A stretch of DNA of 64,000 bases from Macrostomum lignano. Lineage: Eukaryota. This document shows, piece by piece, positions 46,938 through 51,233 of this stretch (position 1 is its first letter; the number at the start of each line of letters is the position of its first letter). The notes under the pieces were generated by a model. That model was not told the DNA's origin. It did no database searches and saw only the letters and a list, made by a program, of their open reading frames with translations. The stretch covers positions 248,001-312,000 of the forward strand of contig NIVC01000029.1 in the NCBI GenBank assembly GCA_002269645.1, given 5' to 3'. A program made the translations under genes and the position numbers.

Positions 46938-49900
46938 ATGTCTCAAACTCGACGGGAAAATCTGGACAATTCGACAGGTAAAGTGTTGTTGATTGCTTGC
47001 TTTTTTGATTGTCAATTTTGATGTGAATTATTACATTAGAGAGGGAGAGAGAGAGAGAGAGAGAGAGAGAGAGAGAGGAGAGAGAGAGAGAGAGAGAGAG
47101 AGACAGAGAGAGGGAGAGAGAGAGGAGAGAGAGAGAGAGAGAGAGAGAGAGAGAGAGAGAGAGACAGAGAGAGGGAGAGAGAGGAGAGAGAGAGAGAGAG
47201 AGAGAGAGAGACAGAGAGAGGGAGAGAGAGAGAGAGAGAGAGAGAGAGAGAGAGAGAGAGAGACAGAGAGAGGGAGAGAGAGAGAGAGAGAGAGAGAGAG
47301 AGAGAGAGAGAGAGAGAGAGAGAGAGAGAGAGAGAGAGAGAGAGAGAGAGAGAGAGAGAGAGGGAGAGAGAGAGGAGAGAGAGAGAGAGAGAGAGACAGA
47401 GAGAGGGAGAGAGAGAGGAGAGAGAGAGAGAGAGAGAGAGAGAGAGACAGAGAGAGGGAGAGAGAGAGAGAGAGGGAGAGAGAGAGGAGAGAGAGAGAGA
47501 GAGAGAGACAGAGAGAGGGAGAGAGAGAGGAGAGAGAGAGAGAGAGAGAGAGAGAGAGAGAGACAGAGAGAGGGAGAGAGAGAGGAGAGAGAGAGAGAGA
47601 GAGAGAGAGAGAGAGAGAGAGAGAGAGAGAGACAGAGAGAGGGAGAGAGAGAGGAGAGAGAGAGAGAGAGAGAGAGAGAGAGAGAGAGAGAGAGAGAGAG
47701 AGAGAGAGAGAGAGAGAGAGAGAGAGAGAGAGAGGAGAGAGAGAGAGAGAGGAGAGAGAGAGAGAGAGAGAGAGGAGAGAGAGAGAGAGAGAGAGAGAGA
47801 GAGAGAGAGAGAGAGAGAGAGAGAGAGAGAGAGAGGGAGAGAGAGAGAGGAGAGAGAGAGAGAGAGAGAGAGAGGGAGAGAGAGAGGAGAGAGAGAGAGA
47901 GAGAGAGAGAGAGAGAGGGAGAGAGAGAGAGGAGAGAGACTTTAGACCGCAAGTCTGAGAACAAATTTTAGTGATCACTTATGGTTACAGACTCCGTACT
48001 TACAAGAACAACTGTAGTTTATACAAAAACAATTCAATTCTTCGGAGCTTTTACTATTACCCGAGCTCGAAAGTTTGAAAAAACAACTAGGATGCGGTCT
48101 AATAATGTTATCAATTTACCATCATACTAATTAGGTCCTCCAGAAAGGGCATCTTACTCTAAATAACTGAATCTGAATAACTGAGTAACAAAATCCTGTT
48201 ACTCTAGGCGTCTAGGGTATCGTGATCAGGTTCAATCAATAATCAAATCAATGAACCTCTTAGGGTTATCGGAACTAAAATTTCAACGGAAATTGGTTTT
48301 TTAATAAGCAGCCTAGCCTAGCCGTAACTCTACTTTCGGTAATTCGTTGTTTATTAATTGTTTGATTGTTTTTCATAACGATTTATTATTTTGTTATACA
48401 GCGAGTGTTTGTATTACTCTACTTCTAAATAGCATTTTATAAATGACCGGTACTTTACCAGGCTATAAGGTCATTCGAAATTTTTGCCGTCGTGTATAAA
48501 AAAAATTTTTTTCTCGGTTCCAATGTTAAATTAGGACTTCTCGATGCCCCTCGAAATTTTGTTCCAAACGTTAGCTCTTTGAAATGATATCGGTTCCTTT
48601 CAAGCAAGCAATGAATGAATTAATGAGTGAATGAATCAAGCAATCAATCAGACCAGCAATCAATCAATCAATCAATCAATCAGTCAATCAATCAATCAAT
48701 CAGTCAATCAATCAATCAATCAGTCAATCAATCAATCAATCAGTCAATCAATCGATCTAACCCAGCAATCAATCAATCAATCAGTCAATCAATCAATGAA
48801 ATCCAGCAATCAATCTATCAATCAATCAATCAATCAGTCAATCAATCGATCTAACCCAGCAATCAATCAATCAATCAGTCAATCGATCGATCTAACCCAG
48901 CAATCAGCCAATCAATCGATCAATCAATCAATCAATCAATCAATCGATCAATCAGTCAATCAATCGATCTAACCCAGTAATCAATCAATCAATCAATGAA
49001 ACCCAGCAATCAATCTATCTATCTATAAATCAATCAGTCAATCAATCTATCAATCAGTCAATCAATCAATCAATCAATCAGTCAATCGATCGATCTAACC
49101 CAGCAATCAATCAATCAATCAATCAATCAATCAGTCTAGCAATTAATCAATCGATCGATCAATTGGTTTATGAAGTAATCAATGAAGGGATAAACAATCA
49201 ATAAAGGAATTAGTACTAGTAAACTGAAAGATTATTCAATAAATCAAACAATCCTTACATGAATAAATGAATTATTACAATTTAGATTCGAACAGCTTAG
49301 TCAATCAGCTGGTGCAGAGGACCGAGCTCACCGGAACAACCTGGTCACCTGAGTCGAATGACAATGCCACTGTCTCTGCTCGTAAACGAGCAGCAACCAT
49401 GAGTAGCTATGACGATATTGAATCGAACATACTCGAAGAGCACGCCACTCCAACTAAATTGATGCGAACTGGTAAGTTATGAGATATCTGTTCTGGCCTT
49501 GTTAGGCAGATCATCTCATCCCAGACTTTTAGAGAACCAGAGGCCCCTGGAAACCACATATCTTCAGAACCTGGCGTTTATCTATAGATGCTGCCCACTC
49601 ATTTATAGATCCTGCACACCCATCTAGAGATCCTGCCCACCCATTTATAGATCCTGCACACCCATCTAGAGATCCTAGACACACCTATATAGAGATCATA
49701 GGACACACCTATCTAGAGATCATAGGACACATCCATCTAGAGATCCTAGACACACCGATCTATAGATCCTAGACACACCCATCTATAGATCATAGACACA
49801 CTCATCTAGAGATCATAGACACACCCATCTAGAGATCATAGACACACTCATCTAGAGATCATAGACACACCCATCTAGAGATCATAGACACACCCATCTA

Positions 49901-51233
49901 GAGATCCTAGACACACCCATCTAGAGATCATAGACACATCCATCTAGAGATCCTAGACACACCGATCTATAGATCCTAGACACACCCATCTATAGATCAT
50001 AGACACACTCATCTAGAGATCATAGACACACCCATCTAGAGATCATAGACACACTCATCTAGAGATCATAGACACACCCATCTAGAGATCATAGACACAC
50101 CCATCTAGAGATCCTAGACACACCCATCTAGAGATCATAGACACATCCATCTAGAGATCCTAGACACACCGATCTATAGATCCTAGACACACCCATCTAT
50201 AGATCATAGACACACTCATCTAGAGATCATAGACACACCCATCTAGAGATCATAGACACACCCATCTAGAGATCCTAGACACACCCATCTAGAGATCATA
50301 GACACATCCATCTAGAGATCCTAGACACACCGATCTATAGATCATAGACACACTCATCTAGAGATCATAGACACACCCATCTAGAGATTCTCATGTAGTT
50401 TCTCAAGTTCTCGTCCAGGGGACCCTGTCTAAGCAAACGAGCACAGACCGTTATTACCGTATGAGCTCGTGTACTTATTGCTTGAACACTCGCGCATACC
50501 TCATATACATTGGTCCATTGTCTCAGACGTTCAACCATCGACCGGCCACTTTGCAAGTGCACCATGTACTAGCAGTCCAATAGTGAAGGAGAACAAATCG
50601 TCGGGAAAACCTGACAGCTTATTAATTATAATCGAGCTGGATGATTTACAATTCACATCCGACCAGCTCATCCACCTGCTGGACGCTACTCTACTCGAGT
50701 GGTTCAGCCAGCCTCTCGGAGGCGAAGTTTTCATCTTGTCGCCATTCTTTAATTCGCAAAAGAATTTCTTTAATCCCAAGCGGAATCTCAACGCTGTTTA
50801 CCTGGCAAACATCTTGAAACAACGCGACGCTGAAGGCTCCAAAGTCAAGCTGACTCTGTGCACTCGCGATAAACCGGAACTCTTCGTCAAATTAGCGTCC
50901 GAGCTCAAGTCAGTGGAGGTTCACTGGCAGGAGATGAGTCAAGGGTCTCTCAAGCAGAGGCTATACTACTGCCACTCGAAGATTCTGGCCTACTGCCCTC
51001 CAGACGACGTGAGCGAGCCAGTTCAAGCGGTTATAACCTCGGCCAATTTTGATCAAAAGCATTTTAACTTCAGTAAGAAGCTGCTGGAATCTGAGCTGTA
51101 CGCCGTGGGAGACAACAGCGATGAGTATCTGAATCGAGACACCTGGTACAAGATAACCGCAAAGAGGCACAGCTTTGAGAAATTGCGAAAAGAGATGGTG
51201 GAAGATTTGTCGGATTTCTCGCTGATTTTTTAA
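46938..51233 (+). CDS. Orphan PLD-superfamily (single HxK motif) nuclease-like protein, ~341 aa; exons 46938-46977, 49286-49471, 50434-51233
   Basis: All junctions are phase-1 GT-AG and the total is 1026 nt in frame. The C-terminal domain has ILSPF, YCHSKILAY and VITSANF motifs. The last exon is strong; the first two exons are inferred. Confidence 0.7.
47038..47938. repeat. (GA)n, ~900 bp, in intron 1 of the PLD-like gene
   Basis: Direct inspection. Confidence 0.98.
48615..49160. repeat. (TCAA)n, degenerate
   Basis: Direct inspection. Confidence 0.96.
49595..50385. repeat. 23-bp minisatellite CATCTAGAGATCATAGACACACC in intron 2 of the PLD-like gene
   Basis: Period 23, ~34 copies. Confidence 0.96.

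Follow-up and report, generated by a model that had tools for sequence, protein, structure and literature searches.

What kind of protein is encoded by a gene whose product resembles hardly anything in the databases and still carries one motif reminiscent of a well-known enzyme superfamily? This question is raised by a locus on the forward strand of a 64,000-nucleotide (nt) stretch of DNA from the flatworm Macrostomum lignano (GenBank assembly GCA_002269645.1, contig NIVC01000029.1, positions 248,001 to 312,000), which as a whole is called the window below and whose numbering is used throughout. The locus, of which the region 46700-51500 was read directly, is a real-looking, protein-coding, lineage-restricted gene of M. 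lignano and consists of three exons. A 298-residue counterpart from the same species, A0A1I8G658, is present in UniRef under the source name 'Tyrosyl-DNA phosphodiesterase' and is uncharacterised. The reading that is tentatively preferred here, at a confidence just short of even, is that the gene would encode a very divergent single-domain phosphodiesterase of the phospholipase D (PLD) superfamily, of the His-Lys-Asn (HKN) type and confined to this lineage, which would need to form a homodimer. The gene is already catalogued and would at best add an unusual new member to a superfamily that is known.

The Motif and Its Weak Affinity for PLD-Clan Profiles

The third exon encodes ...ILSPFF...YCHSKILAY, followed by 12 residues (CPPDDVSEPVQA) and VITSANF, exactly as quoted in an initial annotation of this DNA. 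The motif is the only match to H-x-K-x(8-30)-[GST]-[SA]-x-N in the 310-residue product. Of the canonical signature H-x-K-x4-D-x6-G-S-x-N, the His, Lys, Ser, and Asn are kept (H225, K227, S247, and N249), while the Asp is missing, the Gly is replaced by Thr, and the H-to-N spacing is 24 instead of 17; the earlier description of a single motif without Asp and with extended spacing is thus borne out. The longer spacing would not be disqualifying, because the second motif of TDP1 has an H-to-N distance of 23 and fly Zucchini tolerates a long insertion that moves G-S-x-N about 20 residues further from H-x-K. As also proposed in the initial annotation, there is no obvious N-terminal mitochondrial anchor such as that of Zucchini; the maximum Kyte-Doolittle mean over 19 residues is 0.28 in residues 1-100 and 0.87 overall, and the protein is predicted to be devoid of any N-terminal membrane anchor.

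A motif of this size may arise by chance, and the strongest alternative, a serious if doubtful one, is that the locus is a genuine orphan gene in which the H-x-K...S-x-N arrangement is coincidental, the protein having another or a new alpha/beta fold and no phosphodiesterase activity. The frequency of the bare pattern H-x-K-x(8-30)-[GST]-S-x-N, which is found in 1.4-2% of composition-matched shuffles of the protein, speaks for coincidence. Against it stands the combination of the motif with its hydrophobic strand context (LYYCHSKILAY...VQAVITSANF), for which the chance rate is 5.5e-5, albeit for a pattern that was defined post hoc.

Comparison with Pfam profiles bears on the same alternative. 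When native fragments spanning the motif were searched at an expectation value (E) of up to 10, a single family was matched, namely RE_NgoFVII (PF09565) of the PLD clan, with E values of 0.14-0.19. The scores of 11.5-11.9 bits are far under the Pfam gathering score of 23.8 bits. The alignment falls on the catalytic-motif columns 93-124 of the profile and extends to column 145 of 162 in the longer fragment. Upon artificial shortening of the loop within the motif, the E value for RE_NgoFVII falls to 0.011, and a shorter artificial loop variant additionally matches PLDc_2 (PF13091) with an E value of 0.071 (13.4 bits versus a cutoff of 27), a family that is not matched in Pfam by the native sequence. 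As a control, 30 shuffled sequences were prepared in which the H, K, T, S, and N of the motif were fixed in place. Marginal matches of similar strength, at E values around 0.1, turned out to be common, occurring in six of the 30, as would be expected under coincidence; all six, however, were to unrelated families, and no shuffle matched a PLD-clan family, in contrast to the native sequence, whose marginal matches are confined to that clan and to its catalytic-motif columns. From this it follows that the likeness to PLD enzymes is not limited to the five catalytic-type residues and includes the surroundings of the motif. The motif region has a weak, exclusive affinity for PLD-clan profiles, which weakly supports a relationship to the PLD superfamily.

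Several results weigh against a PLD-type phosphodiesterase and are in line with a coincidental motif. Besides the missing Asp and the frequency of the bare pattern, they include the absence of significance in every comparison with PLD families and structures. In Pfam, neither the whole protein nor its 206-residue domain nor A0A1I8G658 has a match at E <= 10, no match was obtained in NCBIfam and PADLOC, and PHROGs returned weak matches only, to families of unknown function. Whether queried with the complete sequence, the domain, or the fragment around the motif, the Protein Data Bank (PDB) yielded noise in sequence searches (major sperm protein, a viral polymerase, gp120). The TDP1 and PLD6 families were also addressed individually. 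With a profile built from 22 vertebrate TDP1 sequences, which is shallow (effective number of sequences 1.6) because a large-scale database search had yielded TDP1 proteins from vertebrates alone, hhalign assigned a probability of 0.1% and hmmsearch --max gave no match. Smith-Waterman and semi-global alignment scores against human TDP1 (sequence confirmed versus PDB entry 6mj5) lie within 2 standard deviations of 400 shuffles (z <= 2), and those against human PLD6 (confirmed versus 9lkx) are likewise at noise level, within 2 standard deviations of shuffled sequences. Structure prediction by AlphaFold2 from the single sequence resulted in unusable models, with a predicted local distance difference test score of 42.7 for the full-length protein and 46.9 for the domain, there being no homologues from which an alignment could be built. 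Foldseek, run against the PDB with the domain model, found nothing at E <= 0.001, its top matches being kinases and ribosomal proteins without meaning, so that a PLD-like match is missing from the models, too. The name carried by A0A1I8G658, finally, comes from an independent pipeline and as such argues against coincidence, but it may go back to no more than this weak signal. In accordance with these searches, the view that the protein is unlike PLD1-6, TDP1, and FAM83 is upheld as regards canonical members, as none of the profile searches gave a significant match.

Gene Structure and Coding Potential

The features of the gene are compiled in Table 1. Exons 1 and 2 both end in phase 1, and their junction is in frame. 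It agrees residue for residue with A0A1I8G658, so that the first of the two splice junctions proposed initially (46977/49286) stands. The second one (49471/50434) is probably wrong. An open frame indeed runs from 50433/50434 to the TAA codon, as had been stated for an uninterrupted exon of 800 nt; within it, 50434 and 50527 are the only in-frame acceptors for exon 3. Use of the former would lead to a product of 341 residues, use of the latter (TTGTCTCAG) to one of 310 residues that reads ...KLMRT/DVQPSTG... across the junction. A0A1I8G658 shares the exon 1/2 junction and has its exon 3 acceptor at 50526/50527, not at 50433/50434.

The choice between the two acceptors was examined by a codon-usage log-likelihood score trained on the other open frames of the window. 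Exon 3, taken from 50527, scores +0.17 in frame, its alternative frames scoring -0.36 and -0.24, and exons 1 and 2 together score +0.07, which is the best of the three frames. The 93 nt between the two acceptors score -0.51 in frame, where non-coding controls score -0.5 to -0.7; they are probably intronic or would at most reflect an alternative acceptor. Because of the acceptor in A0A1I8G658 and this non-coding-like score, the coding part of exon 3 is taken to be about 707 nt rather than 800 nt, and the protein to comprise 310 rather than 341 residues. The best gene model would thus probably be 46938-46977 / 49286-49471 / 50527-51233. The TATA-like element reported previously is present upstream of exon 1.

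Table 1. Features of the M. lignano gene and its flanks; positions refer to the window, residue numbers to the 310-residue product.
Feature	Position	Strand	Remarks
TATA-like box TATATAAG	46821..46828	+	read from sequence; ~110 nt 5' of ATG
Exon 1, coding part, 40 nt, peptide MSQTRRENLDNST	46938..46977	+	ATG start; phase-1 donor G/GTAAAG
Intron 1, 2308 nt	46978..49285	+	mostly tandem repeats: (AG)n 47038-47939, (TCAA)n 48600-49163; Tandem Repeats Finder
Exon 2, 186 nt, phase 1 at both ends	49286..49471	+	acceptor TTTAG, donor G/GTAAGT
Intron 2 according to the database model, 1055 nt	49472..50526	+	A0A1I8G658 junction KLMRT/DVQPS
Disputed 93-nt segment, ANEHRPLLPYELVYLLLEHSRIPHIHWSIVS	50434..50526	+	counted as coding in the initial annotation; missing from A0A1I8G658
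Exon 3, 707 nt including TAA stop at 51231-51233	50527..51233	+	end of linker and ~200-residue motif domain
H-x-K...T-S-A-N motif	50973..51047	+	H225 50973-50975, K227 50979-50981, T246-S247 51036-51041, N249 51045-51047
Possible poly(A) signal	51687..51692	+	sole ATTAAA/AATAAA from stop codon to 52200; ~450 nt past stop

In 64 kb of DNA with 44% GC, chance alone would not be expected to produce a non-repetitive open frame exceeding 230 codons, a rough estimate being ~0.02 to 0.1 such frames per window. The peptide encoded by exon 2 is rich in Ser, Thr, and Asn, and the first ~100 residues of the protein, of this same composition, are probably disordered. Concerning expression, there is no M. 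lignano entry in Logan for this gene; as the aminopeptidase gene used as a control is missing likewise, the result is uninformative. Both introns are repetitive. The arrays in intron 1 amount to 458 copies of (AG)n over ~900 nt and 139 copies of (TCAA)n over ~560 nt, and intron 2 contains a 23-nt unit in about 34 copies at 49615-50388 (Tandem Repeats Finder).

Database Counterpart and Orphan Status

A0A1I8G658 is 98% identical to the product of the window, with five differences among the 298 aligned residues; in the part encoded by exon 2, 60 of 62 residues (97%) are the same. The database sequence ends with ...KLRKE, 12 residues ahead of the stop codon of the window, where a GT (GAGATG/GTGGAAG) is found at 51198; the earlier end may reflect truncation of that copy, a difference in splicing, or incomplete modelling. 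A0A1I8G658 was the single match when 5.8 billion proteins were searched by indexed words, and it was again alone, at E <= 0.001, when 1.84 billion representatives of genomic and metagenomic proteins were scanned in full with phmmer. The proposal of an orphan animal gene is therefore sustained, with the qualification that the gene already has a UniProt entry; at the sequence level, homologues outside M. lignano are not detectable by these searches. Close relatives of M. lignano are thinly sampled, since even for the aminopeptidase encoded nearby in the window the closest relative from another species in the 5.8-billion-protein collection, which is transcript-derived, is only 63% identical. A fast-evolving gene could thus have orthologues outside the coverage of the databases.

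No paper linking Macrostomum lignano to TDP1 or tyrosyl-DNA phosphodiesterase was found in the literature that was searched. As Pfam's own TDP1 model (PF06087) has no match at E <= 10 to the whole protein, the domain, the fragments, or A0A1I8G658, we infer that the database name was assigned by an InterPro or PANTHER rule.

Comparison with TDP1

The name of the database entry makes TDP1 the obvious point of reference. The PLD motifs of TDP1 are devoid of Asp, and its catalytic part is preceded by a long disordered N-terminus. The HKN-type motif with Asn and without Asp, for which an H-to-N distance of ~20-23 is typical of TDP1, is common to TDP1 and the flatworm protein. In human TDP1, the second motif (H493/K495/N516, H-I-K...T-S-A-N) comes within one residue of the spacing in the flatworm protein, whose T-S-A-N is the same as human residues 513-516; a long hydrophilic N-terminal region ahead of the domain is another common trait. 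TDP1 differs in that it has two motifs in a catalytic core of ~450 residues, whereas the flatworm protein has one motif in a domain of ~200 residues and has neither profile nor pairwise similarity to TDP1 above noise. A canonical TDP1 is ruled out by this one motif and one domain and by the failure to find a second domain in the window. A missing C-terminal TDP1 domain was sought downstream and elsewhere in the 64-kb window by tblastn with five vertebrate TDP1 proteins, and none was found; the 3' flank of the gene has 35% G+C and codon scores that are non-coding-like.

These traits could also be read as signs of decay. The gene would then descend from a partial duplicate of a TDP1-type gene that retained one HKN domain, and would now encode a non-catalytic pseudoenzyme with a binding or regulatory role, or be an incipient pseudogene; this explanation is considered unlikely. 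It would account for the source name, for T-S-A-N and the 24-residue spacing, for the long N-terminus, and for the best BLASTP match to TDP1 (E 0.57, not significant), which lies in the N-terminal domain of TDP1 and precedes the first motif there by about the distance to be expected. Many recent duplicates in M. lignano, such as the segmental duplication in the window and the 98% identical copy A0A1I8G658, would fit as well. On the other hand, beyond the motif there is no statistical similarity to TDP1, and no second TDP1 domain in the window. Neither of the two known copies has an interrupted frame, and codon usage is coding-like, so that the gene is not an obvious pseudogene; catalytic His, Lys, and Asn are all kept.

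Comparison with Single-Motif Nucleases

The preferred reading, a dimeric PLD-type phosphodiesterase, has architectural parallels in single-motif nucleases. Nuc (1BYR), NucT, and Zucchini/PLD6, which belong to PLDc_2 and act as homodimers, have one catalytic motif per chain and a domain of ~150-200 residues, to both of which the flatworm protein is similar. The order of hydrophobic strands and amphipathic helices around the motif looks similar by eye, an impression that is not counted as evidence. These enzymes differ from the flatworm protein by having the Asp and G-S-x-N, where the latter has T-S-A-N and no Asp, and the mitochondrial anchor of Zucchini is absent from it. The N-terminal PLD domain of NgoFVII and BfiI is represented by PF09565, the sole Pfam family touched by the native motif region. 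BfiI is a metal-independent homodimer with a single shared active site (PMC2853115). The flatworm protein differs from this pair in lacking a DNA-recognition domain and bacterial relatives, and in being encoded by a eukaryotic gene with introns.

The marginal match to a bacterial restriction-enzyme domain, together with the mostly bacterial distribution of single-motif PLD nucleases, could recall the initial suggestion of a horizontal or mobile origin, from a bacterium, virus, or mobile element with a PLD-family nuclease, but this is disfavoured as very improbable, given the two GT-AG spliceosomal introns within the coding sequence, the absence of any bacterial, archaeal, viral, or metagenomic match among the 1.84 billion representatives at E <= 0.001, the G+C content of the exons (0.45-0.49), which is close to the 0.40-0.44 of introns and upstream flank, albeit above the 0.35 of the A+T-rich 3' flank, the lack of inverted repeats bracketing the gene, where only a palindromic array at 46213-46426 was found, and the lack of a meaningful match in PADLOC and PHROGs.

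Proposed Mechanism

In PLD chemistry, as known from Nuc, BfiI, Zucchini, and TDP1, two His-Lys-Asn sets are arranged around one phosphate. The first His attacks and becomes a covalent phospho-histidine, and the second, as general acid, protonates the leaving group. Nuc, BfiI, and Zucchini/PLD6 are homodimers with a composite active site. In the case of the flatworm protein, the probably disordered N-terminus of ~100 residues would be followed by an alpha/beta domain of ~200 residues representing a divergent HKN-type PLD domain. Because this chemistry needs two motifs and the chain has one, activity would require a homodimer, in which the two chains would contribute to a composite active site as in the three enzymes named above. 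Cleavage of phosphodiester bonds would be metal-independent and would most likely act on nucleic-acid ends or adducts, and the N-terminal 100 residues may serve in localisation or in the binding of partners. Gene structure, coding character, species, lack of relatives, and the motif with its weak affinity are observed directly; fold, dimer, activity, and substrate are inferred. A role in genome defence or small-RNA processing, as envisaged initially, is speculation.

A more specific version of this scheme is rather unlikely but worth stating. The protein could be a 'half-TDP1' restricted to Macrostomum, whose HKN PLD domain of ~200 residues homodimerises and thereby rebuilds a TDP1-like site, giving a metal-independent phosphodiesterase that would act on DNA or RNA ends or on protein-DNA adducts. 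To our knowledge, no animal member of the TDP1 branch with such a single-motif architecture has been reported.

If the fold of the domain is truly that of an HKN-type PLD enzyme, the protein would be a minimal animal relative of TDP1 or Zucchini with one motif, would help to ask how a dimeric ancestor gave rise to TDP1 with its two domains, and would provide a candidate DNA-end- or RNA-processing enzyme in a model species of regeneration. If the motif is coincidental, the locus would merely join the many lineage-restricted genes of unknown function that fill this genome. In either case, the machine-given name 'tyrosyl-DNA phosphodiesterase' is not reproducible by standard profile searches.

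Surroundings of the Gene

About 400 nt 5' of the TATA-like box, the palindromic array at 46213-46426 is composed of a 16-nt unit (TTTAGGCGTTGTGAAA) and has arms with 100% complementarity, the longest measuring 34 nt. Tandem repeats are very dense across 40000-45651, 47038-50388, and 53653-54142. They include a 23-nt unit in 68 copies (42874-44447), (TGTC)n in 172 copies (44968-45651), and a 15-nt unit in 33 copies. Many of the tandem repeats of the window give rise to long spurious open frames on both strands; one example is a (TGTC)n-type microsatellite at ~38980-39560, which is open in frame and results in a spurious open reading frame of 321 residues.

The beginning of the window is occupied by a tandem segmental duplication (213-8680 and 9826-19793) with a period of ~9.1-11.1 kb and 92-99.6% identity. 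It contains two copies of a gene for an Xaa-Pro aminopeptidase (M24B) on the minus strand. In copy 2, there is a single frame of 576 residues (12675-14405, minus strand), whose product shares 98% identity with a further M. lignano protein and, together with A0A1I8G658, marks the window as M. lignano DNA. Two separate frames, 2907-4040 and 4094-4609, take its place in copy 1. Copy 2 also has an insertion of nine residues, reading GIGRDSGTTQFWRDYP versus GIGRDYP in copy 1.

Further possible genes or gene remnants were noted. On the plus strand, a frame of 277 residues at 27385-28218 matches the fold of a tyrosine recombinase (Pfam Phage_integrase, E 4e-8; DUF3504, E 3e-5) and looks like the remnant of a Crypton-type or domesticated recombinase. 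Exons of a transporter of the major facilitator superfamily are located at 38690-40930 on the same strand, three fragments matching MFS_1 at successive profile positions. On the minus strand, a frame at 54818-55546 starts with GKGHYWTVD and continues with long runs of Gln, His, and Ala; the piece alone has no Pfam match, and its start resembles a forkhead DNA-binding domain at its C-terminal end, the rest of which would be encoded by an upstream exon.

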